This document shows positions 33,340 to 64,000 of a DNA stretch of 64,000 nucleotides, one piece after another. Within the stretch, counting starts at the first letter, position 1. Each line of letters opens with the position of its first letter. Origin of the DNA: Auanema rhodensis (Eukaryota > Animalia > Nematoda). The translations under genes were made by a program, and so were the position numbers. The stretch spans positions 434,001 through 498,000 of the forward strand of contig OZ059899.1 of assembly GCA_964057225.1 (NCBI GenBank), written 5' to 3'. The notes under the pieces were generated by a model, which saw only the letters and a program-made list of their open reading frames with translations, was not told where the DNA came from and ran no database searches.

Positions 33340-36300
33340 ATCTCTTTATCTTTCACGTGAAGCGAGTTACATACCAAGTACACATCACGTGTACATTTAA
33401 TTAGCATAAATTGAAGTTCACGTAAATTTCAAAGTCATGGTTACCATGAACCAATATCAATAAAAATTCGTTTTTAAACTAATATGGACATGAGGAATCT
33501 AATTTTGAAAACCGCATCTCTTTATCTTTCACGTGAAGCGAGTTACATACCAAGTGCACATCACGTGTACATTTAATTAGCATAAATTGAAGTTCACGTA
33601 AATTTCAAAGTCATGGTTACCATGAACCAATATCAATAAAAATTTGTTTTTAGACTAATATGGACATGGGGAATCTAATTTTGAAAACCGGATCTCTTTA
33701 TCTTTCACGTGAAGCGAGTTACATACCAAGTGCACATCACGTGTACATTTAATTAACATAAATTGAAGTTCACGTAAATTTCAAAGTCATGGTTACCATG
33801 AACCAATATCAATAAAAATTTGTTTTTAGACTAATATGGACATGGGGAATCTAATTTTGAAAACCGCATCTCTTTATCTTTCACGTGAAGCGAGTTACAT
33901 ACCAAGTGCACATCACGTGTACATTTAATTAGCATAAATTAAAGTTCACGTGAATTTCAAAGTCATGGTTACCATGCACAAATATCAATAAAAATTTGTT
34001 TTTAGACTAATATGGACATGGGGAATCTAATTTTGAAAACCGCATCTCTTTATCTTTCACGTGAAGCGAGTTACATACCAAGTGCACATCACGTGTACAT
34101 TTAATTAGCATAAATTAAAGTTCACGTAAATTTCAAAGTCATGGTTACCATGAACCAATATCAATAAAAATTTGTTTTTAGACTAATATGGACATGGGTA
34201 ATCTAATTTTGAAAACCGCATCTCTTTATCTTTCACGTGAAGCGAGTTACATACCAAGTGCACATCACGTGTACATTTAATTAGCATAAATTAAAGTTCA
34301 CGTGAATTTCAAAGTCATGGTTACCATGCACAAATATCAATAAAAATTTGTTTTTAGACTAATATGGACATGGGGAATCTAATTTTGAAAACCGCATCTC
34401 TTTATCTTTCACGTGAAGCGAGTTACATACCAAGTGCACATCACGTGTACATTTAATTAGCATAAATTAAAGTTCACGTAAATTTCAAAGTCATGGTTAC
34501 CATGAACCAATATCAATAAAAATTTGTTTTTAGACTAATATGGACATGGGTAATCTAATTTTGAAAACCGCATCTCTTTATCTTTCACGTGAAGCGAGTT
34601 ACATACCAAGTGCACATCACGTGTACATTTAATTAGCATAAATTAAAGTTCACGTAAATTTCAAAGTCATGGTTACCATGAACCAATATCAATAAAAATT
34701 TGTTTTTAGACTAATATGGACATGGGGAATCTAATTTTGAAAACCACATCTCTTTATCGTTCACGTGAAGCGAGTTACATACCAAGTGCACATCACGTGT
34801 ACATTTAATTAGCATAAATTAAAGTTCACGTAAATTTCAAAGTCATGGTTACCATGCACCAATATCAATAAAAATTTGTTTTTAGACTAATATGGACATG
34901 AGGAATCTAATTTTGGAAACCGAATCTCTTTATCTTTCACGTGAAGCGAGTTACATACCAAGTGCACATCACGTGTACATTTAATTAGCATAAATTGAAG
35001 TTCACGTAAATTTCAAAGTCATGGTTACCATGAACCAATATCAATAAAAATTTGTTTTTAGTCTAATATGGACATGGGGAATCTAATTTTGAAAACCGCA
35101 TCTCTTTATCTTTCACGTGAAGCGAGTTACATACCAAGTACACATCACGTGTACATTTAATTAGCATAAATTGAAGTTCACGTAAATTTCAAAGTCATGG
35201 TTACCATGAACCAATATCAATAAAAATTCGTTTTTAAACTAATATGGACATGAGGAATCTAATTTTGAAAACCGCATCTCTTTATCTTTCACGTGAAGCG
35301 AGTTACATACCAAGTGCACATCACGTGTACATTTAATTAGCATAAATTGAAGTTCACGTAAATTTCAAAGTCATGGTTACCATGAACCAATATCAATAAA
35401 AATTTGTTTTTAGACTAATATGGACATGGGGAATCTAATTTTGAAAACCGGATCTCTTTATCTTTCACGTGAAGCGAGTTACATACCAAGTGCACATCAC
35501 GTGTACATTTAATTAACATAAATTGAAGTTCACGTAAATTTCAAAGTCATGGTTACCATGAACCAATATCAATAAAAATTTGTTTTTAGACTAATATGGA
35601 CATGGGGAATCTAATTTTGAAAACCGCATCTCTTTATCTTTCACGTGAAGCGAGTTACATACCAAGTGCACATCACGTGTACATTTAATTAGCATAAATT
35701 AAAGTTCACGTGAATTTCAAAGTCATGGTTACCATGCACAAATATCAATAAAAATTTGTTTTTAGACTAATATGGACATGGGGAATCTAATTTTGAAAAC
35801 CGCATCTCTTTATCTTTCACGTGAAGCGAGTTACATACCAAGTGCACATCACGTGTACATTTAATTAGCATAAATTAAAGTTCACGTAAATTTCAAAGTC
35901 ATGGTTACCATGAACCAATATCAATAAAAATTTGTTTTTAGACTAATATGGACATGGGTAATCTAATTTTGAAAACCGCATCTCTTTATCTTTCACGTGA
36001 AGCGAGTTACATACCAAGTGCACATCACGTGTACATTTAATTAGCATAAATTAAAGTTCACGTGAATTTCAAAGTCATGGTTACCATGCACAAATATCAA
36101 TAAAAATTTGTTTTTAGACTAATATGGACATGGGGAATCTAATTTTGAAAACCGCATCTCTTTATCTTTCACGTGAAGCGAGTTACATACCAAGTGCACA
36201 TCACGTGTACATTTAATTAGCATAAATTAAAGTTCACGTAAATTTCAAAGTCATGGTTACCATGAACCAATATCAATAAAAATTTGTTTTTAGACTAATA

Positions 36301-36890
36301 TGGACATGGGTAATCTAATTTTGAAAACCGCATCTCTTTATCTTTCACGTGAAGCGAGTTACATACCAAGTGCACATCACGTGTACATTTAATTAGCATA
36401 AATTAAAGTTCACGTAAATTTCAAAGTCATGGTTACCATGAACCAATATCAATAAAAATTTGTTTTTAGACTAATATGGACATGGGGAATCTAATTTTGA
36501 AAACCACATCTCTTTATCGTTCACGTGAAGCGAGTTACATACCAAGTGCACATCACGTGTACATTTAATTAGCATAAATTAAAGTTCACGTAAATTTCAA
36601 AGTCATGGTTACCATGCACCAATATCAATAAAAATTTGTTTTTAGACTAATATGGACATGAGGAATCTAATTTTGGAAACCGAATCTCTTTATCTTTCAC
36701 GTGAAGCGAGTTACATACCAAGTGCACATCACGTGTACATTTAATTAGCATAAATTGAAGTTCACGTAAATTTCAAAGTCATGGTTACCATGAACCAATA
36801 TCAATAAAAATTTGTTTTTAGTCTAATATGGACATGGGGAATCTAATTTTGAAAACCGCATCTCTTTATCTTTCACGTGAAGCGAGTTAC
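33340..36890. repeat. Higher-order tandem duplication of 10 monomers (1760-bp period)
   Basis: Private variants recur at +1760: AATTCGTTTTTAAACT (33461/35221), CCGGATC (33691/35451), AATTAACATA (33751/35511), AACCACATC (34741/36501), GTCTAAT (35061/36821). Confidence 0.9.
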
Positions 36891-39800
36891 ATACCAAGTG
36901 CACATCACGTGTACATTTAATTAGCATAAATTAAAGTTCACGTAAATTTCAAAGTCATGGTTACCATGCACCAATATCAATAAAAATTTTTTTTTAGACT
37001 AATATGGACATGGGGAATCTAATTTTGAAAACCGCATCTCTTTATCTTTCACGTGAAGCGAGTTACATACCAAGTGCACATCACGTGTACATTTAATTAG
37101 CATAAATTAAAGTTCACGTAAATTTCAAAGTCATGGTTACCAAGCACCAATATCAATAAAAATTTGTTTTTAGACTAATATGGACATGAGGAATCTAATT
37201 TTGGAAACCGAATCTCTTTATCTTTCACGTGAAGCGAGTTACATACCAAGTGCACATCACGTGTACATTTAATTAGCATAAATTGAAGTTCACGTAAATT
37301 TCAAAGTCATGGTTACCATGAACCAATATCAATAAAAATTTGTTTTTAGTCTAATATGGACATGGGGAATCTAATTTTGAAAACCGCATCTCTTTATCTT
37401 TCACGTGAAGCGAGTTACATACCAAGTGCACATCACGTGTACATTTAATTAGCATAAATTAAAGTTCACGTAAATTTCAAAGTCATGGTTACCATGCACC
37501 AATATCAATAAAAATTTTTTTTTAGACTAATATGGACATGGGGAATCTAATTTTGAAAACCGCATCTCTTTATCTTTCACGTGAAGCGAGTTACATACCA
37601 AGTGCACATCACGTGTACATTTAATTAGCATAAATTAAAGTTCACGTAAATTTCAAAGTCATGGTTACCAAGCACCAATATCAATAAAAATTTGTTTTTA
37701 GACTAATATGGACATGGGGAATCTAATTTTGAAAACCGCATCTCTTTATCTTTCACGTGAAGCGAGTTACATACCAAGTGCACATCACGTGTACATTTAA
37801 TTAGCATAAATTAAAGTTCACGTAAATTTCAAAGTCATGGTTACCATGCACCAATATCAATAAAAATTTGTTTTTAAACTAATATGGACATGGGGAATCT
37901 AATTTTGAAAACCGCATCTCTTTATCTTTCACGTGAAGCGAGTTACATACCAAGGGCACATCACGTGTACATTTAATTAGCATAAATTAAAGTTCACGTA
38001 AATTTCAAAGTCATGGTTACCATGCACCAATATCAATAAAAATTTGTTTTTAGACTAATATGGACATGGGGAATCTAATTTTGAAAACCGCATCTCTTTA
38101 TCTTTCACGTGAAGCGAGTTACATACCAAGTGCACATCACGTGTACATTTAATTAGCATAAATTAAAGTTCACGTAAATTTCAAAGTCATGGTTACCATG
38201 AACCAATATCAATAAAAATTTGTTTTTAGACTAATATGGACATGGGGAATCTAATTTTGAAAACCGCATCTCTTTATCGTTCACGTGAAGCGAGTTACAT
38301 ACCAAGTGCACATCACGTGTACATTTAATTAGCATAAATTAAAGTTCACGTAAATTTCAAAGTCATGGTTACCATGAAAAAATATCAATAAAAATTTGTT
38401 TTTAAACTAATATGGACATGGGGAATCTAATTTTGAAAACCGCATCTCTTTATCTTTCACGTGAAGCGAGTTACATACCAAGTGCACATCACGTGTACAT
38501 TTAATTAGCATAAATTAAAGTTCACGTAAATTTCAAAGTCATGGTTACCATGCACCAATATCAATAAAAATTTGTTTTTAGACTAATATGGACATGGGGA
38601 ATCTAATTTTGAAAACCGCATCTCTTTATCTTTCACGTGAAGCGAGTTACATACCAAGTGCACATCACGTGTACATTTAATTAGCATAAATTGAAGTTCA
38701 CGTAAATTTCAAAGTCATGGTTACCATGAACCAATATCAATAAAAATTTGTTTTTAGACTAATATGGACATGGGGAATCTAATTTTGAAAACCGCATCTC
38801 TTTATCTTTCACGTGAAGCGAGTTACATACCAAGTACACATCACGTGTACATTTAATTAGCATAAATTGAAGTTCACGTAAATTTCAAAGTCATGGTTAC
38901 CATGAACCAATATCAATAAAAATTTGTTTTTAGACTAATATGGACATGGGGAATCTAATTTTGAAAACCGCATCTCTTTATCTTTCACGTGAAGCGAGTT
39001 ACATACCAAGTGCACATCACGTGTACATTTAATTAGCATAAATTAAAGTTCACGTAAATTTCAAAGTCATGGTTACCATGAACCAATATCAATAAAAATT
39101 TGTTTTTAGACTAATATGGACATGGGGAATCTAATTTTGAAAACCGCATCTCTTTATCGTTCACGTGAAGCGAATTACATACCAAGTGCACATCACGTGT
39201 ACATTTAATTAGCATAAATTAAAGTTCACGTAAATTTCAAAGTCATGGTTACCATGAACCAATATCAATAAAAATTTGTTTTTAGACTAATATGGACATG
39301 GGGAATCTAATTTTGAAAACCGCATCTCTTTATCTTTCACGTGAAGCGAGTTACATACCAAGTGCACATCACGTGTACATTTAATTAGCATAAATTAAAG
39401 TTCACGTAAATTTCAAAGTCATGGTTACCATGAACCAATATCAATAAAAATTTGTTTTTAGACTAATATGGACATGGGGAATCTAATTTTGAAAACCGCA
39501 TCTCTTTATCTTTCACGTGAAGCGAGTTACATACCAAGTGCACATCACGTGTACATTTAATTAGCATAAATTAAAGTTCACGTAAATTTCAAAGTCATGG
39601 TTACCATGAACCAATATCAATAAAAATTTGTTTTTAGACTAATATGGACATGGGGAATCTAATTTTGAAAACCGCATCTCTTTATCGTTCACGTGAAGCG
39701 AGTTACATACCAAGTGCACATCACGTGTACATTTAATTAGCATAAATTAAAGTTCACGTAAATTTCAAAGTCATGGTTAACATGCACCAATATCAATAAA

Positions 39801-42800
39801 AATTTGTTTTTAGACTAATATGGACATGGGGAATCTAATTTTGAAAACCGCATCTCTTTATCGTTCACGTGAAGCGAGTTACATACCAAGTGCACATCAC
39901 GTGTACATTTAATTAGCATAAATTAAAGTTCACGTAAATTTCAAAGTCATGGTTACCATGCACCAATATCAATAAAAATTTGTTTTTAGACTAATATGGA
40001 CATGGGGAATCTAATTTTGAAAACCGCATCTCTTTATCGTTCACGTGAAGCGAGTTACATACCAAGAGCACATCACGTGTACATTTAATTAGCATAAATT
40101 AAAGTTCACGTAAATTTCAAAGTCATGGTTACCATGCACCAATATCAATAAAAATTTGTTTTTAGACTAATATGGACATGGTGAATCTAATTTTGAAAAC
40201 CGCATCTCTTTATCGTTCACGTGAAGCGAGTTACATACCAAGTGCACATCACGTGTACATTTAATTAGCATAAATTAAAGTTCACGTAAATTTCAAAGTC
40301 ATGGTTACCATGCACCAATATCAATAAAAATTTGTTTTTAGACTAATATGGACATGGGGAATCTAATTTTGAAAACCGCATCTCTTTATCTTTCACGTGA
40401 AGCGAGTTACATACCAAGAGCACATCACGTGTACATTTAATTAGCATAAATTGAAGTTCACGTAAATTTCAAAGTCATGGTTACCATGAACCAATATCAA
40501 TAAAAATTTGTTTTTAGACTAATATGGACATGGGGAATCTAATTTTGAAAACCGCATCTCTTTATCTTTCAGGTGAAGCGAGTTACATACCAAGTGCACA
40601 TCACGTGTACATTTAATTAGCATAAATTAAAGTTCACGTAAATTTCAAAGTCATGGTTACCATGCACCAATATCAATAAAAATTTGTTTTTAGACTAATA
40701 TGGACATGGGGAATCTAATTTTGAAAACCGCATCTCTTTATCTTTCACGTGAAGCGAGTTACATACCAAGTGCACATCACGTGTACATTTAATTAGCATA
40801 AATTAAAGTTCACGTAAATTTCAAAGTCATGGTTACCATGAACCAATATCAATAAAAATTTGTTTTTAGACTAATATGGACATGGGGAATCTAATTTTGA
40901 AAACCGCATCTCTTTATCTTTCACGTGAAGCGAGTTACATACCAAGTACACATCACGTGTACATTTAATTAGCATAAATTGAAGTTCACGTAAATTTCAA
41001 AGTCATGGTTACCATGAACCAATATCAATAAAAATTTGTTTTTAGACTAATATGGACATGGGGAATCTAATTTTGAAAACCGCATCTCTTTATCTTTCAC
41101 GTGAAGCGAGTTACATACCAAGTGCACATCACGTGTACATTTAATTAGCATAAATTAAAGTTCACGTAAATTTCAAAGTCATGGTTACCATGAACCAATA
41201 TCAATAAAAATTTGTTTTTAGACTAATATGGACATGGGGAATCTAATTTTGAAAACCGCATCTCTTTATCTTTCACGTGAAGCGAGTTACATACCAAGTG
41301 CACATCACGTGTACATTTAATTAGCATAAATTAAAGTTCACGTAAATTTCAAAGTCATGGTTACCATGAACCAATATCAATAAAAATTTGTTTTTAGACT
41401 AATATGGACATGGGGAATCTAATTTTGAAAACCGCATCTCTTTATCTTTCACGTGAAGCGAGTTACATACCAAGTACACATCACGTGTACATTTAATTAG
41501 CATAAATTGAAGTTCACGTAAATTTCAAAGTCATGGTTACCATGAACCAATATCAATAAAAATTTGTTTTTAGACTAATATGGACATGGGGAATCTAATT
41601 TTGAAAACCGCATCTCTTTATCTTTCACGTGAAGCGAGTTACATACCAAGTGCACATCACGTGTACATTTAATTAGCATAAATTAAAGTTCACGTAAATT
41701 TCAAAGTCATGGTTACCATGAACCAATATCAATAAAAATTTGTTTTTAGACTAATATGGACATGGGGAATCTAATTTTGAAAACCGCATCTCTTTATCTT
41801 TCACGTGAAGCGAGTTACATACCAAGTGCACATCACGTGTACATTTAATTAGCATAAATTAAAGTTCACGTAAATTTCAAAGTCATGGTTACCATGAACC
41901 AATATCAATAAAAATTTGTTTTTAGACTAATATGGACATGGGGAATCTAATTTTGAAAACCGCATCTCTTTATCTTTCACGTGAAGCGAGTTACATACCA
42001 AGTGCACATCACGTGTACATTTAATTAGCATAAATTGAAGTTCACGTAAATTTCAAAGTCATGGTTACCATGAACCAATATCAATAAAAATATGTTTTTA
42101 GACTAATATGGACATGGGGAATCTAATTTTGAAAACCGCATCTCTTTATCTTTCACGTGAAGCGAGTTACATACCAAGTGCACATCACGTGTACATTTAA
42201 TTAGCATAAATTAAAGTTCACGTAAATTTCAAAGTCATGGTTACCATGAACCAATATCAATAAAAATTTGTTTTTAGACTAATATGGACATGGGGAATCT
42301 AATTTTGAAAACCGCATCTCTTTATCGTTCACGTGAAGCGAGTTACATACCAAGTGCACATCACGTGTACATTTAATTAGCATAAATTAAAGTTCACGTA
42401 AATTTCAAAGTCATGGTTACCATGCACCAATATCAATAAAAATTTGTTTTTAGACTAATATGGACATGGGGAATCTAATTTTGGAAACCGAATCTCTTTA
42501 TCTTTCACGTGAAGCGAGTTACATACCAAGTGCACATCACGTGTACATTTAATTAGCATAAATTAAAGTTCACGTAAATTTCAAAGTCATGGTTACCATG
42601 CACCAATATCAATAAAAATTTGTTTTTAGACTAATATGGACATGGGGAATCTAATTTTGAAAACCGCATCTCTTTATCTTTCACGTGAAGCGAGTTACAT
42701 ACCAAGTGCACATCACGTGTACATTTAATTAGCATAAATTAAAGTTCACGTAAATTTCAAAGTCATGGTTACCATGAACCAATATCAATAAAAATTTGTT

Positions 42801-45800
42801 TTTAGACTAATATGGACATGGGGAATCTAATTTTGAAAACCGCATCTCTTTATCGTTCACGTGAAGCGAGTTACATACCAAGTGCACATCACGTGTACAT
42901 TTAATTAGCATAAATTAAAGTTCACGTAAATTTCAAAGTCATGGTTACCATGCACCAATATCAATAAAAATTTGTTTTTAGACTAATATGGACATGGGGA
43001 ATCTAATTTTGGAAACCGAATCTCTTTATCTTTCACGTGAAGCGAGTTACATACCAAGTGCACATCACGTGTACATTTAATTAGCATAAATTGAAGTTCA
43101 CGTAAATTTCAAAGTCATGGTTACCATGAACCAATATCAATAAAAATTTGTTTTTAGACTAATATGTACATGGGGAATCTAATTTTGAAAACCGCATCTC
43201 TTTATCTTTCACGTAAAGCGAGTTACATACCAAGTGCACATCACGTGTACATTTAATTAGCATAAATTAAAGTTCACGTAAATTTCAAAGTCATGGTTAC
43301 CATGAACCAATATCAATAAAAATTTGTTTTTAGACTAATATGGACATGGGGAATCTAATTTTGAAAACCGCATCTCTTTATCTTTCACGTGAAGCGAGTT
43401 ACATACCAAGTGCACATCACGTGTACATTTAATTAGCATAAATTGAAGTTCACGTAAATTTCAAAGTCATGGTTACCATGAACCAATATCAATAAAAATT
43501 TGTTTTTAGACTAATATGGACATGGGGAATCTAATTTTGAAAACCGCATCTCTTTATCTTTCACGTGAAGCGAGTTACATACCAAGTGCACATCACGTGT
43601 ACATTTAATTAGCATAAATTAAAGTTCACGTAAATTTCAAAGTCATGGTTACCATGAACCAATATCAATAAAAATTTGTTTTTAGACTAATATGGACATG
43701 GGGAATCTAATTTTGAAAACCGCATCTCTTTATCGTTCACGTGAAGCGAGTTACATACCAAGTGCACATCACGTGTACATTTAATTAGCATAAATTAAAG
43801 TTCACGTAAATTTCAAAGTCATGGTTACCATGCACCAATATCAATAAAAATTTGTTTTTAGACTAATATGGACATGGGGAATCTAATTTTGGAAACCGAA
43901 TCTCTTTATCTTTCACGTGAAGCGAGTTACATACCAAGTGCACATCACGTGTACATTTAATTAGCATAAATTAAAGTTCACGTAAATTTCAAAGTCATGG
44001 TTACCATGCACCAATATCAATAAAAATTTGTTTTTAGACTAATATGGACATGGGGAATCTAATTTTGAAAACCGCATCTCTTTATCTTTCACGTGAAGCG
44101 AGTTACATACCAAGTGCACATCACGTGTACATTTAATTAGCATAAATTAAAGTTCACGTAAATTTCAAAGTCATGGTTACCATGAACCAATATCAATAAA
44201 AATTTGTTTTTAGACTAATATGGACATGGGGAATCTAATTTTGAAAACCGCATCTCTTTATCTTTCACGTGAAGCGAGTTACATACCAAGTGCACATCAC
44301 GTGTACATTTAATTAGCATAAATTAAAGTTCACGTAAATTTCAAAGTCATGGTTACCATGCACCAATATCAATAAAAATTTGTTTTTAGACTAATATGGA
44401 CATGGGGAATCTAATTTTGAAAACCGCATCTCTTTATTTTTCACGTGAAGCGAGTTACATACCAAGTGCACATCACGTGTACATTTAATTAGCATAAATT
44501 AAAGTTCACGTAAATTTCAAAGTCATGGTTACCAAGCACCAATATCAATAAAAATTTGTTTTTAGACTAATATGGACATGGGGAATCTAATTTTGAAAAC
44601 CGCATCTCTTTATCTTTCACGTGAAGCGAGTTACATACCAAGGGCACATCACGTGTACATTTAATTAGCATAAATTAAAGTTCACGTAAATTTCAAAGTC
44701 ATGGTTACCATGCACCAATATCAATAAAAATTTGTTTTTAGACTAATATGGACATGGGGAATCTAATTTTGAAAACCGCATCTCTTTATCTTTCACGTGA
44801 AGCGAGTTACATACCAAGTGCACATCACGTGTACATTTAATTAGCATAAATTAAAGTTCACGTAAATTTCAAAGTCATGGTTACCATGAACCAATATCAA
44901 TAAAAATTTGTTTTTAGACTAATATGGACATGGGGAATCTAATTTTGAAAACCGCATCTCTTTATCGTTCACGTGAAGCGAGTTACATACCAAGTGCACA
45001 TCACGTGTACATTTAATTAGCATAAATTAAAGTTCACGTAAATTTCAAAGTCATGGTTACCATGCACCAATATCAATAAAAATTTGTTTTTAGACTAATA
45101 TGGACATGGGGAATCTAATTTTGGAAACCGCATCTCTTTATCTTTCACGTGAAGCGAGTTACATACCAAGAGCACATCACGTGTACATTTAATTAGCATA
45201 AATTGAAGTTCACGTAAATTTCAAAGTCATGGTTACCATGAACCAATATCAATAAAAATATGTTTTTAGACTAATATGGACATGGGGAATCTAATTTTGA
45301 AAACCGCATCTCTTTATCTTTCACGTGAAGCGAGTTACATACCAAGTGCACATCACGTGTACATTTAATTAGCATAAATTGAAGTTCACGTAAATTTCAA
45401 AGTCATGGTTACCATGAACCAATATCAATAAAAATTTGTTTTTAGACTAATATGGACATGGGGAATCTAATTTTGAAAACCGCATCTCTTTATCTTTCAC
45501 GTGAAGCGAGTTACATACCAAGGGCACATCACGTGTACATTTAATTAGCATAAATTAAAGTTCACGTAAATTTCAAAGTCATGGTTACCATGCACCAATA
45601 TCAATAAAAATTTGTTTTTAGACTAATATGGACATGGGGAATCTAATTTTGAAAACCGCATCTCTTTATCTTTCACGTGAAGCGAGTTACATACCAAGTG
45701 CACATCACGTGTACATTTAATTAGCATAAATTAAAGTTCACGTAAATTTCAAAGTCATGGTTACCATGAACCAATATCAATAAAAATTTGTTTTTAGACT

Positions 45801-46767
45801 AATATGGACATGGGTAATCTAATTTTGAAAACCGCATCTCTTTATCGTTCACGTGAAGCGAGTTACATACCAAGTGCACATCACGTGTACATTTAATTAG
45901 CATAAATTAAAGTTCACGTAAATTTCAAAGTCATGGTTACCATGCACCAATATCAATAAAAATTTGTTTTTAGACTAATATGGACATGGGGAATCTAATT
46001 TTGGAAACCGCATCTCTTTATCTTTCACGTGAAGCGAGTTACATACCAAGAGCACATCACGTGTACATTTAATTAGCATAAATTGAAGTTCACGTAAATT
46101 TCAAAGTCATGGTTACCATGAACCAATATCAATAAAAATATGTTTTTAGACTAATATGGACATGGGGAATCTAATTTTGAAAACCGCATCTCTTTATCTT
46201 TCACGTGAAGCGAGTTACATACCAAGTGCACATCACGTGTACATTTAATTAGCATAAATTGAAGTTCACGTAAATTTCAAAGTCATGGTTACCATGAACC
46301 AATATCAATAAAAATTTGTTTTTAGACTAATATGGACATGGGGAATCTAATTTTGAAAACCGCATCTCTTTATCTTTCACGTGAAGCGAGTTACATACCA
46401 AGTACACATCACGTGTACATTTAATTAGCATAAATTAAAGTTCACGTAAATTTCAAAGTCATGGTTACCATGCACCAATATCAATAAAAATTTGTTTTTA
46501 GACTAATATGGACATGGGGAATCTAATTTTGAAAACCGCATCTCTTTATCTTTCACGTGAAGCGAGTTACATACCAAGTGCACATCACGTGTACATTTAA
46601 TTAGCATAAATTAAAGTTCACGTAAATTTCAAAGTCATGGTTACCATGCACCAATATCAATAAAAATTTGTTTTTAGACTAATATGGACATGGGGAATCT
46701 AATTTTGAAAACCGCATCTCTTTATCTTTCACGTGAAGCGAGTTACATACCAAGTGCACATCACGTG

Positions 46768-46965
46768 AACCTTATAACCTGTGATTCGAACTTATAACCT
46801 GTGATTCGAACTATAACCTGTGATTCGAACCTATAACCTGTGATTCGAACGTATAACCTGTGATTCGAACGTATAACCTGTGATTCGAACTTATAACCTG
46901 TGATTCGAACTTATAACCTGTGATTCGAACTTATAACCTGTGATTCGAACAATAAACCCGTTCAA
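46768..46965. repeat. 198-bp inserted cassette, copy 1: 9 x 19-nt unit TATAACCTGTGATTCGAAC with variable 0-1 nt junctions and tail AATAAACCCGTTCAA
   Basis: Interrupts ...GCACATC-ACGTG-TACATTT. ACGTG is present on both sides (46763-46767 and 46966-46970). The host monomer grows from 176 to 379 bp (+203). Units start at 46773, 46793, 46812, 46832, 46852, 46872, 46892, 46912 and 46932. Confidence 0.97.
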
Positions 46966-48730
46966 ACGTGTACATTTAATTAGCATAAATTAAAGTTCAC
47001 GTAAATTTCAAAGTCATGGTTACCATGCACCAATATCAATAAAAATTTGTTTTTAGACTAATATGGACATGGGGAATCTAATTTTGAAAACCGCATCTCT
47101 TTATTTTTCACGTGAAGCGAGTTACATACCAAGTGCACATCACGTGTACATTTAATTAGCATAAATTAAAGTTCACGTAAATTTCAAAGTCATGGTTACC
47201 AAGCACCAATATCAATAAAAATTTGTTTTTAGACTAATATGGACATGGGGAATCTAATTTTGAAAACCGCATCTCTTTATCTTTCACGTGAAGCGAGTTA
47301 CATACCAAGTGCACATCACGTGTACATTTAATTAGCATAAATTAAAGTTCACGTAAATTTCAAAGTCATGGTTACCAAGCACCAATATCAATAAAAATTT
47401 GTTTTTAGACTAATATGGACATGGGGAATCCAATTTTGAAAACCGCATCTCTTTATCTTTCACGTGAAGCGAGTTACATACCAAGGGCACATCACGTGTA
47501 CATTTAATTAGCATAAATTAAAGTTCACGTAAATTTCAAAGTCATGGTTACCATGCACCAATATCAATAAAAATATGTTTTTAGACTAATATGGACATGG
47601 GGAATCTAATTTTGAAAACCGCATCTCTTTATCTTTCACGTGAAGCGAGTTACATACCAAGTGCACATCACGTGTACATTTAATTAGCATAAATTAAAGT
47701 TCACGTAAATTTCAAAGTCATGGTTACCATGAACCAATATCAATAAAAATTTGTTTTTAGACTAATATGGACATGGGGAATCTAATTTTGAAAACCGCAT
47801 CTCTTTATCGTTCACGTGAAGCGAGTTACATACCAAGTGCACATCACGTGTACATTTAATTAGCATAAATTAAAGTTCACGTAAATTTCAAAGTCATGGT
47901 TACCATGCACCAATATCAATAAAAATTTGTTTTTAGACTAATATGGACATGGGGAATCTAATTTTGGAAACCGCATCTCTTTATCTTTCACGTGAAGCGA
48001 GTTACATACCAAGAGCACATCACGTGTACATTTAATTAGCATAAATTGAAGTTCACGTAAATTTCAAAGTCATGGTTACCATGAACCAATATCAATAAAA
48101 ATATGTTTTTAGACTAATATGGACATGGGGAATCTAATTTTGAAAACCGCATCTCTTTATCTTTCACGTGAAGCGAGTTACATACCAAGTGCACATCACG
48201 TGTACATTTAATTAGCATAAATTGAAGTTCACGTAAATTTCAAAGTCATGGTTACCATGAACCAATATCAATAAAAATTTGTTTTTAGACTAATATGGAC
48301 ATGGGGAATCTAATTTTGAAAACCGCATCTCTTTATCTTTCACGTGAAGCGAGTTACATACCAAGTACACATCACGTGTACATTTAATTAGCATAAATTA
48401 AAGTTCACGTAAATTTCAAAGTCATGGTTACCATGCACCAATATCAATAAAAATTTGTTTTTAGACTAATATGGACATGGGGAATCTAATTTTGAAAACC
48501 GCATCTCTTTATCTTTCACGTGAAGCGAGTTACATACCAAGTGCACATCACGTGTACATTTAATTAGCATAAATTAAAGTTCACGTAAATTTCAAAGTCA
48601 TGGTTACCATGCACCAATATCAATAAAAATTTGTTTTTAGACTAATATGGACATGGGGAATCTAATTTTGAAAACCGCATCTCTTTATCTTTCACGTGAA
48701 GCGAGTTACATACCAAGTGCACATCACGTG

Positions 48731-48928
48731 AACCTTATAACCTGTGATTCGAACTTATAACCTGTGATTCGAACTATAACCTGTGATTCGAACCTATAAC
48801 CTGTGATTCGAACGTATAACCTGTGATTCGAACGTATAACCTGTGATTCGAACTTATAACCTGTGATTCGAACTTATAACCTGTGATTCGAACTTATAAC
48901 CTGTGATTCGAACAATAAACCCGTTCAA
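48731..48928. repeat. 198-bp inserted cassette, copy 2
   Basis: Same sequence and insertion site as copy 1; 1963 bp (10 monomers + 203) downstream. Confidence 0.97.
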
Positions 48929-50693
48929 ACGTGTACATTTAATTAGCATAAATTAAAGTTCACGTAAATTTCAAAGTCATGGTTACCATGCACCAATATC
49001 AATAAAAATTTGTTTTTAGACTAATATGGACATGGGGAATCTAATTTTGAAAACCGCATCTCTTTATTTTTCACGTGAAGCGAGTTACATACCAAGTGCA
49101 CATCACGTGTACATTTAATTAGCATAAATTAAAGTTCACGTAAATTTCAAAGTCATGGTTACCAAGCACCAATATCAATAAAAATTTGTTTTTAGACTAA
49201 TATGGACATGGGGAATCTAATTTTGAAAACCGCATCTCTTTATCTTTCACGTGAAGCGAGTTACATACCAAGTGCACATCACGTGTACATTTAATTAGCA
49301 TAAATTAAAGTTCACGTAAATTTCAAAGTCATGGTTACCAAGCACCAATATCAATAAAAATTTGTTTTTAGACTAATATGGACATGGGGAATCCAATTTT
49401 GAAAACCGCATCTCTTTATCTTTCACGTGAAGCGAGTTACATACCAAGGGCACATCACGTGTACATTTAATTAGCATAAATTAAAGTTCACGTAAATTTC
49501 AAAGTCATGGTTACCATGCACCAATATCAATAAAAATATGTTTTTAGACTAATATGGACATGGGGAATCTAATTTTGAAAACCGCATCTCTTTATCTTTC
49601 ACGTGAAGCGAGTTACATACCAAGTGCACATCACGTGTACATTTAATTAGCATAAATTAAAGTTCACGTAAATTTCAAAGTCATGGTTACCATGAACCAA
49701 TATCAATAAAAATTTGTTTTTAGACTAATATGGACATGGGGAATCTAATTTTGAAAACCGCATCTCTTTATCGTTCACGTGAAGCGAGTTACATACCAAG
49801 TGCACATCACGTGTACATTTAATTAGCATAAATTAAAGTTCACGTAAATTTCAAAGTCATGGTTACCATGCACCAATATCAATAAAAATTTGTTTTTAGA
49901 CTAATATGGACATGGGGAATCTAATTTTGGAAACCGCATCTCTTTATCTTTCACGTGAAGCGAGTTACATACCAAGAGCACATCACGTGTACATTTAATT
50001 AGCATAAATTGAAGTTCACGTAAATTTCAAAGTCATGGTTACCATGAACCAATATCAATAAAAATATGTTTTTAGACTAATATGGACATGGGGAATCTAA
50101 TTTTGAAAACCGCATCTCTTTATCTTTCACGTGAAGCGAGTTACATACCAAGTGCACATCACGTGTACATTTAATTAGCATAAATTGAAGTTCACGTAAA
50201 TTTCAAAGTCATGGTTACCATGAACCAATATCAATAAAAATTTGTTTTTAGACTAATATGGACATGGGGAATCTAATTTTGAAAACCGCATCTCTTTATC
50301 TTTCACGTGAAGCGAGTTACATACCAAGTACACATCACGTGTACATTTAATTAGCATAAATTAAAGTTCACGTAAATTTCAAAGTCATGGTTACCATGCA
50401 CCAATATCAATAAAAATTTGTTTTTAGACTAATATGGACATGGGGAATCTAATTTTGAAAACCGCATCTCTTTATCTTTCACGTGAAGCGAGTTACATAC
50501 CAAGTGCACATCACGTGTACATTTAATTAGCATAAATTAAAGTTCACGTAAATTTCAAAGTCATGGTTACCATGCACCAATATCAATAAAAATTTGTTTT
50601 TAGACTAATATGGACATGGGGAATCTAATTTTGAAAACCGCATCTCTTTATCTTTCACGTGAAGCGAGTTACATACCAAGTGCACATCACGTG

Positions 50694-50891
50694 AACCTTA
50701 TAACCTGTGATTCGAACTTATAACCTGTGATTCGAACTATAACCTGTGATTCGAACCTATAACCTGTGATTCGAACGTATAACCTGTGATTCGAACGTAT
50801 AACCTGTGATTCGAACTTATAACCTGTGATTCGAACTTATAACCTGTGATTCGAACTTATAACCTGTGATTCGAACAATAAACCCGTTCAA
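50694..50891. repeat. 198-bp inserted cassette, copy 3
   Basis: Same sequence and site; 1963 bp after copy 2. Confidence 0.97.
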
Positions 50892-52832
50892 ACGTGTACA
50901 TTTAATTAGCATAAATTAAAGTTCACGTAAATTTCAAAGTCATGGTTACCATGCACCAATATCAATAAAAATTTGTTTTTAGACTAATATGGACATGGGG
51001 AATCTAATTTTGAAAACCGCATCTCTTCATCTTTCACGTGAAGCGAGTTACATACCAAGTGCACATCACGTGTACATTTAATTAGCATAAATTAAAGTTC
51101 ACGTAAATTTCAAAGTCATGGTTACCATGCACCAATATCAATAAAAATTTGTTTTTAGACTAATATGGACATGGGGAATCTAATTTTGAAAACCGCATCT
51201 CTTTATTTTTCACGTGAAGCGAGTTACATACCAAGTGCACATCACGTGTACATTTAATTAGCATAAATTAAAGTTCACGTAAATTTCAAAGTCATGGTTA
51301 CCAAGCACCAATATCAATAAAAATTTGTTTTTAGACTAATATGGACATGGGGAATCTAATTTTGAAAACCGCATCTCTTTATCTTTCACGTGAAGCGAGT
51401 TACATACCAAGGGCACATCACGTGTACATTTAATTAGCATAAATTAAAGTTCACGTAAATTTCAAAGTCATGGTTACCATGCACCAATATCAATAAAAAT
51501 TTGTTTTTAGACTAATATGGACATGGGGAATCTAATTTTGAAAACCGCATCTCTTTATCTTTCACGTGAAGCGAGTTACATACCAAGTGCACATCACGTG
51601 TACATTTAATTAGCATAAATTAAAGTTCACGTAAATTTCAAAGTCATGGTTACCATGAACCAATATCAATAAAAATTTGTTTTTAGACTAATATGGACAT
51701 GGGAAATCTAATTTTGAAAACCGCATCTCTTTATCGTTCACGTGAAGCGAGTTACATACCAAGTGCACATCACGTGTACATTTAATTAGCATAAATTAAA
51801 GTTCACGTAAATTTCAAAGTCATGGTTACCATGCACCAATATCAATAAAAATTTGTTTTTAGACTAATATGGACATGGGGAATCTAATTTTGGAAACCGC
51901 ATCTCTTTATCTTTCACGTGAAGCGAGTTACATACCAAGAGCACATCACGTGTACATTTAATTAGCATAAATTGAAGTTCACGTAAATTTCAAAGTCATG
52001 GTTACCATGAACCAATATCAATAAAAATATGTTTTTAGACTAATATGGACATGGGGAATCTAATTTTGAAAACCGCATCTCTTTATCTTTCACGTGAAGC
52101 GAGTTACATACCAAGTGCACATCACGTGTACATTTAATTAGCATAAATTAAAGTTCACGTAAATTTCAAAGTCATGGTTACCATGCACCAATATCAATAA
52201 AAATTTGTTTTTAGACTAATATGGACATGGGGAATCTAATTTTGAAAACCGCATCTCTTTATCTTTCACGTGAAGCGAGTTACATACCAAGTGCACATCA
52301 CGTGTACATTTAATTAGCATAAATTGAAGTTCACGTAAATTTCAAAGTCATGGTTACCATGAACCAATATCGATAAAAATTTGTTTTTAGACTAATATGG
52401 ACATGGGGAATCTAATTTTGAAAACCGCATCTCTTTATCTTTCACGTGAAGCGAGTTACATACCAAGTACACATCACGTGTACATTTAATTAGCATAAAT
52501 TAAAGTTCACGTAAATTTCAAAGTCATGGTTACCATGCACCAATATCAATAAAAATTTGTTTTTAGACTAATATGGACATGGGGAATCTAATTTTGAAAA
52601 CCGCATCTCTTTATCTTTCACGTGAAGCGAGTTACATACCAAGTGCACATCACGTGTACATTTAATTAGCATAAATTAAAGTTCACGTAAATTTCAAAGT
52701 CATGGTTACCATGCACCAATATCAATAAAAATTTGTTTTTAGACTAATATGGACATGGGGAATCTAATTTTGAAAACCGCATCTCTTTATCTTTCACGTG
52801 AAGCGAGTTACATACCAAGTGCACATCACGTG

Positions 52833-53030
52833 AACCTTATAACCTGTGATTCGAACTTATAACCTGTGATTCGAACTATAACCTGTGATTCGAACCTATA
52901 ACCTGTGATTCGAACGTATAACCTGTGATTCGAACGTATAACCTGTGATTCGAACTTATAACCTGTGATTCGAACTTATAACCTGTGATTCGAACTTATA
53001 ACCTGTGATTCGAACAATAAACCCGTTCAA
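52833..53030. repeat. 198-bp inserted cassette, copy 4
   Basis: Same sequence and site; 2139 bp (11 monomers + 203) after copy 3. Confidence 0.97.
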
Positions 53031-56000
53031 ACGTGTACATTTAATTAGCATAAATTAAAGTTCACGTAAATTTCAAAGTCATGGTTACCATGCACCAATA
53101 TCAATAAAAATTTGTTTTTAGACTAATATGGACATGGGGAATCTAATTTTGAAAACCGCATCTCTTCATCTTTCACGTGAAGCGAGTTACATACCAAGTG
53201 CACATCACGTGTACATTTAATTAGCATAAATTAAAGTTCACGTAAATTTCAAAGTCATGGTTACCATGCACCAATATCAATAAAAATTTGTTTTTAGACT
53301 AATATGGACATGGGGAATCTAATTTTGGAAACCGCATCTCTTTATCTTTCACGTGAAGCGAGTTACATACCAAGTGCACATCACGTGTACATTTAATTAG
53401 CATAAATTAAAGTTCACGTAAATTTCAAAGTCATGGTTACCATGAACCAATATCAATAAAAATATGTTTTTAGACTAATATGGACATGGGGAATCTAATT
53501 TTGAAAACCGCATCTCTTTATCTTTCACGTGAAGCGAGTTACATACCAAGTGCACATCACGTGTACATTTAATTAGCATAAATTAAAGTTCACGTAAATT
53601 TCAAAGTCATGGTTACCATGCACCAATATCAATAAAAATTTGTTTTTAGACTAATATGGACATGGGGAATCTAATTTTGAAAACCGCATCTCTTCATCTT
53701 TCACGTGAAGCGAGTTACATACCAAGTGCACATCACGTGTACATTTAATTAGCATAAATTAAAGTTCACGTAAATTTCAAAGTCATGGTTACCATGCACC
53801 AATATCAATAAAAATTTGTTTTTAGACTAATATGGACATGGGGAATCTAATTTTGAAAACCGCATCTCTTTATTTTTCACGTGAAGCGAGTTACATACCA
53901 AGTGCACATCACGTGTACATTTAATTAGCATAAATTAAAGTTCACGTAAATTTCAAAGTCATGGTTACCATGAACCAATATCAATAAAAATTTGTTTTTA
54001 GACTAATATGGACATGGGGAATCTAATTTTGAAAACCGCATCTCTTTATCGTTCACGTGAAGCGAGTTACATACCAAGTGCACATCACGTGTACATTTAA
54101 TTAGCATAAATTAAAGTTCACGTAAATTTCAAAGTCATGGTTACCATGCACCAATATCAATAAAAATTTGTTTTTAGACTAATATGGACATGGGGAATCT
54201 AATTTTGAAAACCGCATCTCTTTATCTTTCACGTGAAGCGAGTTACATACCAAGTGCACATCACGTGTACATTTAATTAGCATAAATTAAAGTTCACGTA
54301 AATTTCAAAGTCATGGTTACCATGAACCAATATCAATAAAAATATGTTTTTAGACTAATATGGACATGGGGAATCTAATTTTGAAAACCGCATCTCTTTA
54401 TCTTTCACGTGAAGCGAGTTACATACCAAGTGCACATCACGTGTACATTTAATTAGCATAAATTAAAGTTCACGTAAATTTCAAAGTCATGGTTACCATG
54501 CACCAATATCAATAAAAATTTGTTTTTAGACTAATATGGACATGGGGAATCTAATTTTGAAAACCGCATCTCTTCATCTTTCACGTGAAGCGAGTTACAT
54601 ACCAAGTGCACATCACGTGTACATTTAATTAGCATAAATTAAAGTTCACGTAAATTTCAAAGTCATGGTTACCATGCACCAATATCAATAAAAATTTGTT
54701 TTTAGACTAATATGGACATGGGGAATCTAATTTTGAAAACCGCATCTCTTTATTTTTCACGTGAAGCGAGTTACATACCAAGTGCACATCACGTGTACAT
54801 TTAATTAGCATAAATTAAAGTTCACGTAAATTTCAAAGTCATGGTTACCAAGCACCAATATCAATAAAAATTTGTTTTTAGACTAATATGGACATGGGGA
54901 ATCTAATTTTGAAAACCGCATCTCTTTATCTTTCACGTGAAGCGAGTTACATACCAAGGGCACATCACGTGTACATTTAATTAGCATAAATTAAAGTTCA
55001 CGTAAATTTCAAAGTCATGGTTACCATGCACCAATATCAATAAAAAATTGTTTTTAGACTAATATGGACATGGGGAATCTAATTTTGAAAACCGCATCTC
55101 TTTATCTTTCACGTGAAGCGAGTTACATACCAAGTGCACATCACGTGTACATTTAATTAGCATAAATTAAAGTTCACGTAAATTTCAAAGTCATGGTTAC
55201 CATGAACCAATATCAATAAAAATTTGTTTTTAGACTAATATGGACATGGGGAATCTAATTTTGAAAACCGCATCTCTTTATCTTTCACGTGAAGCGAGTT
55301 ACATACCAAGGGCACATCACGTGTACATTTAATTAGCATAAATTAAAGTTCACGTAAATTTCAAAGTCATGGTTACCATGCACCAATATCAATAAAAATT
55401 TGTTTTTAGACTAATATGGACATGGGGAATCTAATTTTGAAAACCGCATCTCTTTATCTTTCACGTGAAGCGAGTTACATACCAAGAGCACATCACGTGT
55501 ACATTTAATTAGCATAAATTGAAGTTCACGTAAATTTCAAAGTCATGGTTACCATGAACCAATATCAATAAAAATATGTTTTTAGACTAATATGGACATG
55601 GGGAATCTAATTTTGAAAACCGCATCTCTTTATCTTTCACGTGAAGCGAGTTACATACCAAGTGCACATCACGTGTACATTTAATTAGCATAAATTAAAG
55701 TTCACGTAAATTTCAAAGTCATGGTTACCATGCACCAATATCAATAAAAATTTGTTTTTAGACTAATATGGACATGGGGAATCTAATTTTGAAAACCGCA
55801 TCTCTTTATCTTTCACGTGAAGCGAGTTACATACCAAGTGCACATCACGTGTACATTTAATTAGCATAAATTGAAGTTCACGTAAATTTCAAAGTCATGG
55901 TTACCATGAACCAATATCAATAAAAATTTGTTTTTAGACTAATATGGACATGGGGAATCTAATTTTGAAAACCGCATCTCTTTATCTTTCACGTGAAGCG

Positions 56001-56379
56001 AGTTACATACCAAGTACACATCACGTGTACATTTAATTAGCATAAATTAAAGTTCACGTAAATTTCAAAGTCATGGTTACCATGCACCAATATCAATAAA
56101 AATTTGTTTTTAGACTAATATGGACATGGGGAATCTAATTTTGAAAACCGCATCTCTTTATCTTTCACGTGAAGCGAGTTACATACCAAGTGCACATCAC
56201 GTGTACATTTAATTAGCATAAATTAAAGTTCACGTAAATTTCAAAGTCATGGTTACCATGCACCAATATCAATAAAAATTTGTTTTTAGACTAATATGGA
56301 CATGGGGAATCTAATTTTGAAAACCGCATCTCTTTATCTTTCACGTGAAGCGAGTTACATACCAAGTGCACATCACGTG

Positions 56380-56577
56380 AACCTTATAACCTGTGATTCG
56401 AACTTATAACCTGTGATTCGAACTATAACCTGTGATTCGAACCTATAACCTGTGATTCGAACGTATAACCTGTGATTCGAACGTATAACCTGTGATTCGA
56501 ACTTATAACCTGTGATTCGAACTTATAACCTGTGATTCGAACTTATAACCTGTGATTCGAACAATAAACCCGTTCAA
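56380..56577. repeat. 198-bp inserted cassette, copy 5
   Basis: Same sequence and site; 3547 bp (19 monomers + 203) after copy 4. Confidence 0.97.
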
Positions 56578-58694
56578 ACGTGTACATTTAATTAGCATAA
56601 ATTAAAGTTCACGTAAATTTCAAAGTCATGGTTACCATGCACCAATATCAATAAAAATTTGTTTTTAGACTAATATGGACATGGGGAATCTAATTTTGAA
56701 AACCGCATCTCTTCATCTTTCACGTGAAGCGAGTTACATACCAAGTGCACATCACGTGTACATTTAATTAGCATAAATTAAAGTTCACGTAAATTTCAAA
56801 GTCATGGTTACCATGCACCAATATCAATAAAAATTTGTTTTTAGACTAATATGGACATGGGGAATCTAATTTTGGAAACCGCATCTCTTTATCTTTCACG
56901 TGAAGCGAGTTACATACCAAGAGCACATCACGTGTACATTTAATTAGCATAAATTGAAGTTCACGTAAATTTCAAAGTCATGGTTACCATGAACCAATAT
57001 CAATAAAAATATGTTTTTAGACTAATATGGACATGGGGAATCTAATTTTGAAAACCGCATCTCTTTATCTTTCACGTGAAGCGAGTTACATACCAAGGGC
57101 ACATCACGTGTACATTTAATTAGCATAAATTAAAGTTCACGTAAATTTCAAAGTCATGGTTACCATGCACCAATATCAATAAAAATTTGTTTTTAGACTA
57201 ATATGGACATGGGGAATCTAATTTTGAAAACCGCATCTCTTTATCTTTCACGTGAAGCGAGTTACATACCAAGTGCACATCACGTGTACATTTAATTAGC
57301 ATAAATTAAAGTTCACGTAAATTTCAAAGTCATGGTTACCATGAACCAATATCAATAAAAATTTGTTTTTAGACTAATATGGACATGGGGAATCTAATTT
57401 TGAAAACCGCATCTCTTTATCGTTCACGTGAAGCGAGTTACATACCAAGTGCACATCACGTGTACATTTAATTAGCATAAATTAAAGTTCACGTAAATTT
57501 CAAAGTCATGGTTACCATGCACCAATATCAATAAAAATTTGTTTTTAGACTAATATGGACATGGGGAATCTAATTTTGGAAACCGCATCTCTTTATCTTT
57601 CACGTGAAGCGAGTTACATACCAAGAGCACATCACGTGTACATTTAATTAGCATAAATTGAAGTTCACGTAAATTTCAAAGTCATGGTTACCATGAACCA
57701 ATATCAATAAAAATATGTTTTTAGACTAATATGGACATGGGGAATCTAATTTTGAAAACCGCATCTCTTTATCTTTCACGTGAAGCGAGTTACATACCAA
57801 GTGCACATCACGTGTACATTTAATTAGCATAAATTAAAGTTCACGTAAATTTCAAAGTCATGGTTACCATGAACCAATATCAATAAAAATATGTTTTTAG
57901 ACTAATATGGACATGGGGAATCTAATTTTGAAAACCGCATCTCTTTATCTTTCACGTGAAGCGAGTTACATACCAAGTGCACATCACGTGTACATTTAAT
58001 TAGCATAAATTGAAGTTCACGTAAATTTCAAAGTCATGGTTACCATGAACCAATATCAATAAAAATTTGTTTTTAGACTAATATGGACATGGGGAATCTA
58101 ATTTTGAAAATTGCATCTCTTTATCTTTCACGTGAAGCGAGTTACATACCAAGTACACATCACGTGTACATTTAATTAGCATAAATTAAAGTTCACGTAA
58201 ATTTCAAAGTCATGGTTACCATGCACCAATATCAATAAAAATTTGTTTTTAGACTAATATGGACATGGGGAATCTAATTTTGAAAACCGCATCTTTTTAT
58301 CTTTAACGTGAAGCGAGTTACATACCATGTGCACATCACGTGTACATTTAATTAGCATGAATTAAAGTTCACGTAAATTTCAAAGTCATGGTTACCATGA
58401 ACCAATATCAATAAAAATTTGTTTTTAGACTAATATGGACATGGGGAATCTAATTTTGAAAACCGCATCTCTTTATCTTTCACGTGAAGCGAGTTACATA
58501 CCAAGTGCACATCACGTGTACATTTAATTAGCATAAATTAAAGTTCACGTAAATTTCAAAGTCATGGTTACCATGCACCAATATCAATAAAAATTTGTTT
58601 TCAGACTAATATGGACATGGGGAATCTAATTTTGAAAACCGCATCTCTTTATCTTTCACGTGAAGCGAGTTACATACCAAGTGCACATCACGTG

Positions 58695-58892
58695 AACCTT
58701 ATAACCTGTGATTCGAACTTATAACCTGTGATTCGAACTATAACCTGTGATTCGAACCTATAACCTGTGATTCGAACGTATAACCTGTGATTCGAACGTA
58801 TAACCTGTGATTCGAACTTATAACCTGTGATTCGAACTTATAACCTGTGATTCGAACTTATAACCTGTGATTCGAACAATAAACCCGTTCAA
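58695..58892. repeat. 198-bp inserted cassette, copy 6
   Basis: Same sequence and site; 2315 bp (12 monomers + 203) after copy 5. Confidence 0.97.
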
Positions 58893-60833
58893 ACGTGTAC
58901 ATTTAATTAGCATAAATTAAAGTTCACGTAAATTTCAAAGTCATGGTTACCATGCACCAATATCAATAAAAATTTGTTTTTAGACTAATATGGACATGGG
59001 GAATCTAATTTTGAAAACCGCATCTCTTCATCTTTCACGTGAAGCGAGTTACATACCAAGTGCACATCACGTGTACATTTAATTAGCATAAATTAAAGTT
59101 CACGTAAATTTCAAAGTCATGGTTACCATGCACCAATATCAATAAAAATTTGTTTTTAGACTAATATGGACATGGGGAATCTAATTTTGAAAACCGCATC
59201 TCTTTATTTTTCACGTGAAGCGAGTTACATACCAAGTGCACATCACGTGTACATTTAATTAGCATAAATTAAAGTTCACGTAAATTTCAAAGTCATGGTT
59301 ACCAAGCACCAATATCAATAAAAATTTGTTTTTAGACTAATATGGACATGGGGAATCTAATTTTGAAAACCGCATCTCTTTATCTTTCACGTGAAGCGAG
59401 TTACATACCAAGGGCACATCACGTGTACATTTAATTAGCATAAATTAAAGTTCACGTAAATTTCAAAGTCATGGTTACCATGCACCAATATCAATAAAAA
59501 TTTGTTTTTAGACTAATATGGACATGGGGAATCTAATTTTGAAAACCGCATCTCTTTATCTTTCACGTGAAGCGAGTTACATACCAAGTGCACATCACGT
59601 GTACATTTAATTAGCATAAATTAAAGTTCACGTAAATTTCAAAGTCATGGTTACCATGAACCAATATCAATAAAAATTTGTTTTTATACTAATATGGACA
59701 TGGGGAATCTAATTTTGAAAACCGCATCTCTTTATCGTTCACGTGAAGCGAGTTACATACCAAGTGCACATCACGTGTACATTTAATTAGCATAAATTAA
59801 AGTTCACGTAAATTTCAAAGTCATGGTTACCATGCACCAATATCAATAAAAATTTGTTTTTAGACTAATATGGACATGGGGAATCTAATTTTGGAAACCG
59901 CATCTCTTTATCTTTCACGTGAAGCGAGTTACATACCAAGAGCACATCACGTGTACATTTAATTAGCATAAATTGAAGTTCACGTAAATTTCAAAGTCAT
60001 GGTTACCATGAACCAATATCAATAAAAATATGTTTTTAGACTAATATGGACATGGGGAATCTAATTTTGAAAACCGCATCTCTTTATCTTTCACGTGAAG
60101 CGAGTTACATACCAAGTGCACATCACGTGTACATTTAATTAGCATAAATTAAAGTTCACGTAAATTTCAAAGTCATGGTTACCATGCACCAATATCAATA
60201 AAAATTTGTTTTTAGACTAATATGGACATGGGGAATCTAATTTTGAAAACCGCATCTCTTTATCTTTCACGTGAAGCGAGTTACATACCAAGTGCACATC
60301 ACGTGTACATTTAATTAGCATAAATTGAAGTTCACGTAAATTTCAAAGTCATGGTTACCATGAACCAATATCAATAAAAATTTGTTTTTAGACTAATATG
60401 GACATGGGGAATCTAATTTTGAAAACCGCATCTCTTTATCTTTCACGTGAAGCGAGTTACATACCAAGTACACATCACGTGTACATTTAATTAGCATAAA
60501 TTAAAGTTCACGTAAATTTCAAAGTCATGGTTACCATGCACCAATATCAATAAAAATTTGTTTTTAGACTAATATGGACATGGGGAATCTAATTTTGAAA
60601 ACCGCATCTCTTTATCTTTCACGTGAAGCGAGTTACATACCAAGTGCACATCACGTGTACATTTAATTAGCATAAATTAAAGTTCACGTAAATTTCAAAG
60701 TCATGGTTACCATGCACCAATATCAATAAAAATTTGTTTTTAGACTAATATGGACATGGGGAATCTAATTCTGAAAACCGCATCTCTTTATCTTTCACGT
60801 GAAGCGAGTTACATACCAAGTGCACATCACGTG

Positions 60834-63901: not shown

Positions 63902-64000
63902 ACGTGTACATTTAATTAGCATAAATTAAAGTTCACGTAAATTTCAAAGTCATGGTTACCATGCACCAATATCAATAAAAATTTGTTTTTAGACTAATAT

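Follow-up and report, generated by a model that had tools for sequence, protein, structure and literature searches.

The LINEs best known for inserting at a fixed nucleotide of a multicopy tandem target are R1 and R2 in rDNA and TRAS and SART in telomeric repeats. Like the insertions described here, they encode an endonuclease and a reverse transcriptase (RT) and leave a constant 3' junction, variable 5' truncation and short target duplications; unlike them, the insertions described here use a germline-restricted 176-bp satellite as their target. Non-templated bases, microhomology and occasional rearrangements are found at the 5' junctions of R1 and R2, and long tandem reiteration of the last-copied 17–20 nt is absent from the survey of those junctions (PMC2718515). 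Jumping by the R2 RT in vitro is described, as cited in PMC2718515, as an end-to-end process in which a few non-templated bases are added at run-off before another template is taken up, whereas we propose here a return to an internal position 17–20 nt downstream on the same RNA, made many times and recorded in vivo.

Telomerase, like the process proposed here, re-copies a short RNA template and repositions its product in each round to yield head-to-tail repeats. The analogy is functional only: the candidate enzyme here is a LINE ORF2 (APE plus RVT_1) and not a TERT-type protein, the template would be 17–20 nt at the 5' end of the LINE's own RNA with no dedicated RNA gene or subunit, and the product lies inside an insertion within a satellite rather than at a chromosome end, with an unfaithful junction base. 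Short tandem repeats of variable copy number are known at LINE termini, both as 3'-tail repeat slippage in CR1/L2-type LINEs and as 5' monomer arrays in mouse L1. Those are fixed, element-specific repeats, whereas here any cDNA 5' end can be reiterated, and the reiterated sequence varies accordingly between 3' UTR, ORF1 and the true 5' end. The 3' UTR repeats of Hebe are 72 bp long and not comparable to the arrays here (PMC2861651). Concatemeric or tandem-repeat cDNA made from a short template, by template jumping or telomerase-like addition, is reported for the bacterial defence RTs DRT2 and DRT10 (PMC12039810, PMC12632851); as those reports present them, these systems differ in being prokaryotic, in using a dedicated non-coding RNA and in yielding a product that is not integrated, and the homology is limited to the RT fold.

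The nine-unit array and its amplified copies

The window, that is, the whole 64,000-nucleotide stretch of DNA that was analysed, contains the following satellite:

1..64000, plus strand: 176-bp satellite, about 361 monomers (TRF period 176, 95% matches)

This satellite is the same as AT-1, the germline-restricted repeat known from Auanema rhodense: the FISH probe published for AT-1 matches 239 of the window monomers exactly. AT-1, an autosomal-terminal repeat, is lost from somatic cells from the 12-cell stage (bioRxiv 10.64898/2026.08.27.747507), and the preprint that describes this elimination makes no mention of the LINE or the arrays reported below. Within the satellite lies an insertion with these parts:

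46763..46766, plus strand: upstream copy of the ACGT target-site duplication, within the CACGTG motif of the monomer (from the flanks and from independent LINE copies)
46767..46772, plus strand: extreme 5' end of the insertion, read from the sequence as a partial tenth unit (GAAC) and two junction bases (C, T)
46773..46950, plus strand: nine perfect 19-mers, the reiterated 5'-terminal 19–20 nt of a truncated LINE copy
46951..46965, plus strand: final 15 nt of the LINE (AATAAACCCGTTCAA), a constant 3' terminus whose junction recurs identically at 45 genomic sites
46966..46969, plus strand: downstream copy of the ACGT target-site duplication

The first G of 46767..46772 can be assigned equally well to the satellite. 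A sequence-only reading of this DNA had counted nine exact 19-mers, and our recount agrees; the chance expectation of the 19-mer in the 64-kb window is 0. The bases between successive 19-mers are, in order, T, none, C, G, G, T, T and T, with T before the first unit and A after the last. That variation is confined to the junctions, as the same reading had maintained, is borne out by the counts: four of nine junction slots differ versus none of 171 core positions (Fisher 3e-6, or 9e-5 when the two adjacent Gs are taken as one event). The junction differences are also backed by reads, since contigs from three public DNA runs, one each from three separate studies, hold a perfect 78–79-nt piece spanning the junctions T, none, C and G, and in these contigs no alternative letters or indels occur in the array. 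The uninterrupted target site, with five shared letters, is abundant beside the array in the reads. The one possible RNA run (X10) gave plain satellite without the block, a result that weighs neither way.

The insertion is one of several copies of a 199-bp block with the same junction order and flanks, nine of them in the window and 16 on contig C7, and all nine window blocks have ACGT on either side. The other eight are:

48730..48928, plus strand: copy 2 of the 199-bp insertion, identical in sequence and junction order
50693..50891, plus strand: copy 3
52832..53030, plus strand: copy 4
56379..56577, plus strand: copy 5
58694..58892, plus strand: copy 6
60833..61031, plus strand: copy 7, whose 15-nt tail has since undergone an A-to-G change
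62268..62466, plus strand: copy 8, with the tail A-to-G change of copy 7
63703..63901, plus strand: copy 9, with the tail A-to-G change of copy 7

Because junction order and flanks are identical, the nine window arrays are copies of one event and not repeated events. The 16 copies on C7 also serve as an internal control for what happens to such an array after insertion: they have since acquired two substitutions in cores and one in the tail, one copy has lost a whole unit, and none of their post-insertion changes is at a junction. Since later changes miss the junctions and the founder differences are all located there, the junction variation arose together with the array and did not accumulate afterwards. 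The junction differences are real and go back to one founding event, whose product was afterwards amplified together with the satellite.

These data bear directly on the idea that replication slippage or unequal exchange afterwards enlarged a plain 34–35-bp insertion, with the junction acting as a mutational hot spot. The satellite does recombine actively, as seen in the 16-fold amplification of the block and in the copy that lost a unit, and the GG and TTT runs of junction bases could be local duplications. Slippage would, however, copy the junction base faithfully, which makes three different bases and a deletion against an invariant core improbable (3e-6 to 9e-5); the documented post-insertion changes are in cores and tail rather than at junctions, so that scattered differences of the kind expected of a slippage minisatellite appear only among later copies; and the placement of array starts exactly at the 5' junction in unrelated insertions (see below) would go unexplained. 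We regard this expansion as improbable, and slippage in its pure form was rejected on the junction statistics together with the internal control of amplified copies. Rolling-circle copying of a tiny circular template was also rejected, as every unit would then have the same junction base.

The blocks of the window are spaced by 203 + n x 176 bp, with n equal to 10, 10, 11, 19, 12, 11, 7 and 7 monomers, and the 199-bp insertion has in this way made an irregular higher-order repeat out of the satellite at 46767–63901. The common A-to-G change of the last three blocks, along with their two equal spacings of 1435 bp, indicates a very recent local duplication. Three of the block copies on C7 are inverted (C7:542089-549537; L054, L055, L045), and the satellite array therefore includes an inverted segment; among these three, one has lost its second unit, of 19 nt, and another differs by a G-to-T substitution within a core. 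Incorporation into a higher-order repeat is seen a second time in a truncated 171-bp copy of the same LINE, without reiteration, which was co-amplified with the satellite at a 527-bp period (C4:13064303-13136570; L002-L011).

The source LINE and its target site

The sequence-only reading had raised the possibility that the 19-mer belongs to the 3' end of a mobile element, and this turned out to be so. Outside C7 the 19-mer is single-copy and always lies 15 nt from a LINE 3' end (C1, C4, C6), including that of an intact LINE, in the native context ...CCGAT, then the 19-mer, then AATAAACC. Long copies of the LINE (L033:701-4715, minus strand, and others) encode an ORF1 and a 955-aa ORF2 that are read in different frames and share a 44-nt overlap. 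ORF2 has an RT domain (RVT_1, 8e-34) and, N-terminal to it, an endonuclease domain at residues 43–242 (Exo_endo_phos_2, 7e-9; Exo_endo_phos, 2e-5); its best solved relatives are LINE-1 ORF2p (1e-18) and R2. It was correctly noted earlier that the window, being satellite only, encodes no enzyme, but an intact ORF2 with endonuclease and RT is encoded elsewhere in the genome. Indeed, at least ten copies of this LINE family (with L033:701-3565, minus strand, as one example) and dozens of related copies have an intact ORF2, and this suggests that the LINE is currently active, in DNA that somatic cells discard.

We fetched twenty insertions of this LINE, 140–5948 bp long, and found all of them in the satellite, in one orientation and with one 3' junction. 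The 5' flank usually ends in ...CACGT and the 3' flank begins with ACGTGTACA, with ACGT duplicated. There are at least ten different 5' truncation points, all at the position between CACGT and G of the monomer, on six or more contigs; as the truncation points differ, the twenty insertions represent independent events at one site. An RT with an endonuclease N-terminal to it, a constant 3' end, variable 5' truncation, a short duplication and independent insertions at a single target nucleotide together form the signature of a sequence-specific APE-type LINE, one that would integrate by target-primed reverse transcription. The lack of a poly(A) tail, the 955-aa ORF2 and the Exo_endo_phos_2 match are circumstantial signs of the CR1 clade.

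The block in the window has the exact 3' end of this LINE, the 15-nt tail preceded by the 19-mer, at the exact LINE site, and the 45 sites that share its 3' junction include LINE copies of 140 bp to 5.9 kb. Its target nucleotide and its duplication agree with those of the longer insertions, and it ends in the final 34 nt of the element; the block is therefore a LINE copy truncated to 34–35 nt. What had been taken for synthesis into a break is instead a canonical site-specific LINE insertion, with its ACGT duplication, constant 3' end and 5' truncation. This leaves scarcely any room for the view that the satellite suffered a random break into which some unknown enzyme copied a free ~19-nt template, with no mobile element involved; the absence of an enzyme from the window would suit it, yet the block ends with 34 nt identical to a LINE 3' end and sits, duplication included, at the LINE target nucleotide. 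We consider it very improbable. The earlier proposal of iterative templated synthesis is thereby retained in part, with a defined RNA template of 19–20 nt and an unfaithful or untemplated base at each switch, and loses the free template and the random break.

The LINE belongs to a larger population. A search with ORF2 gave ~240 candidate copies in several lineages of ~60% amino-acid identity, many with intact reading frames, and most of the copies sampled from this search are also in AT-1. Some related lineages lie in the satellite in the opposite orientation (L057, L063, L064, L065 and L070, on C92, C86, C101, C1 and C80), at least one of them at the same palindromic CACGTG and another beside a second ACGTG-containing site (...TTTACGTGAAC). 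The palindromic CACGTG target may allow LINEs to insert in both orientations.

Reiteration at the 5' ends of other insertions

Several other insertions have arrays at their 5' ends. On C95/C101, a copy whose truncation lies within ORF1, 3934 bp from the 3' end, opens with ten complete repeats and one incomplete repeat of the native 17 nt adjoining the truncation point, with variants only at the junction. This 17-mer lies in ORF1 and is single-copy in eight other elements. Full-length 5' ends of the window LINE's own family have 1, 2, 7, 8, 15 or 76 copies of an 18–19-nt unit, with invariant cores and a variable base that can be T, A, G or C, and those of related lineages have 3 to 39 copies of their own 17–20-nt units. 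In one of these arrays (L064, about 31–32 units) the variable site is none, T, A or C in quasi-random order. When arrays were pooled, ~30 of 36 variant events fell at a single position, and partial units at the 5' extreme, as in the window, are also found in the C95 array and in full-length arrays. As far as can be judged from these genomic copies, 5'-end reiteration with variation in the junction base characterises this LINE group in general.

The C95/C101 copy is informative about whether the array was already present in the 3' UTR of a master LINE, in which case the window block would be a copy truncated inside that array. Three degenerate units of about 20 nt already make up the 3' tail of the source element, LINE 3' UTRs with tandem repeats in varying copy number are known (for example Hebe, PMC2861651), and a partial 5' unit is what truncation within an array would leave. 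Yet a whole-genome search, allowing one mismatch and every junction type, found no independent array of the 19-mer outside the C7 block, and no element of the assembly other than the amplified block has more than one 19-mer; a longer donor minisatellite, whose discovery would have told against the sequence-only reading, or a master LINE with an expanded 3' UTR was likewise not found in the assembly. Moreover, the C95/C101 array has the same architecture and cannot have been inherited from a functional master, because its 17-mer lies inside ORF1. A master array is accordingly an unlikely source of the window block.

Reiteration is not obligatory, since most truncated copies are plain-ended (~13 of 15 events), whereas nearly all full-length ends have arrays. 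The repeated units of L064 and L037 are not identical to the native copy beside them, which indicates that full-length arrays are at least partly inherited through RNA. Some variants are clustered, namely GG and TTT in the window array, a run of TTATT units in L039 and a run of 20-nt units in L063, and such clusters fit clonal spread at the DNA level, or inheritance, better than independent events in each cycle. No consistent microhomology was found at the switch points.

A short motif precedes the variable base in otherwise unrelated units: ..TTCGAAC, ..TTTGAAATT, ..TTTGACC, ..CGTGACC and ..TTTCGAC. The comparison covers a small sample, consisting of the window array, the C95 array (L048) and the full-length arrays L033, L068 and L070. 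The motif might mark the point at which copying restarts and so explain the scarcity of arrays on truncated copies.

Two further copies have unusual 5' ends. A truncated LINE copy of 1040 bp (L041, C4:23315050-23321450) carries a 22-nt snap-back inverted repeat of its first bases with a 7-nt loop, and in L072 (C1:26700-29800) an inverted copy of the family's 5'-terminal unit precedes a copy truncated within ORF1, in what looks like a chimeric or twin-priming-like junction. The snap-back and the inverted unit together suggest frequent template switching at the 5'-end step.

Candidate mechanism and its implications

The most reasonable explanation for the window block, and one that we consider probable, is that it is a severely 5'-truncated insertion of the satellite-specific LINE whose terminal 19–20 nt were reiterated, most likely by the LINE's own RT. 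In this scheme, target-primed cDNA would have copied the last 34–35 nt of the LINE RNA and then met the 5' end of its template, which we assume was probably a broken RNA. The polymerase would have stepped back 19–20 nt on the same RNA and copied this stretch anew roughly nine and a half times. The final template base, T, would have been copied correctly at five of the nine switch slots, miscopied or replaced by C, G and G, and skipped once; the final cycle would have been interrupted, giving the partial unit GAAC, and joined to the upstream target. Since the 19-mer follows a T in the source element, the commonest junction base, T, probably comes from the template, and the unit would then really be 20 nt long with an error-prone last position. 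The earlier suggestion that the junction nucleotides are untemplated would thus apply to C, G, G and the missing base, as switch errors, and probably not to T.

Two observations suggest which polymerase was at work. The R2 LINE enzyme is known to add non-templated bases at template run-off and to jump between templates (PMC2718515). In addition, the narrow range of unit lengths (17–20 nt) across unrelated sequences suggests a single enzyme complex of fixed geometry, which favours the LINE's own RT as the writer of the repeats.

A host repair polymerase could also have written the repeats, by end joining of the polymerase-theta type with cycles of annealing, extension and dissociation and error-prone ends, during attachment of the cDNA 5' end to the upstream target. 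In C. elegans, polymerase theta is known to make templated insertions iteratively, the arrays are located exactly at the 5' junctions, where host joining is thought to act, and the snap-back and inverted 5' ends of L041 and L072 resemble the footprints of templated insertion. It is harder to reconcile with such joining that arrays reach 32–76 perfect units with so narrow a unit length, and that they are near-universal at full-length ends and rare at truncated ones, which ties them to arrival at the RNA 5' end. On balance a host polymerase seems to us an unlikely author of the repeats, and we return to the LINE's own RT.

It is conceivable, although we lean somewhat against it, that the RT of this LINE group has an intrinsic telomerase-like repeat-addition mode, with a fixed back-step of 17–20 nt and up to dozens of re-copyings. 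The short T(Y)GA(M)C-like motif would then possibly serve as a template-boundary element, the elements would use each insertion to restore and multiply the promoter-proximal unit at their 5' terminus, and truncated insertions like that in the window would be accidental records of the process, seeding minisatellites and higher-order satellite repeats.

We found no published description of reiterated LINE 5' ends, of tandem-repeat template jumping or of satellite-specific CR1-type LINEs in open-access text searched by exact words, which is weak evidence of novelty. The window block is a further, unusually clean instance of a behaviour of this LINE group that is probably undescribed. If the LINE enzyme does write the repeats, they would be a natural in vivo record of an endonuclease-type LINE RT engaged in processive, telomerase-like addition with a step of ~18 nt, with dozens of independent arrays in which the error of each cycle is preserved. 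Such a record would bear on how retroelement RTs behave at template ends, on the origin of the 5' repeat (monomer) arrays of LINEs and on the evolution of telomerase-like repeat addition from retroelement enzymes. The locus is also a concrete case in which a single event created a minisatellite, which amplification of the satellite then built into a higher-order repeat.

Finally, AT-1, a satellite confined to the germline of a nematode that eliminates DNA in a programmed way, is here a dedicated landing site for active LINEs. The AT-1 FISH probe covers the LINE target nucleotide in every monomer (for example at 47124–47151), and monomers with insertions would consequently escape that probe.
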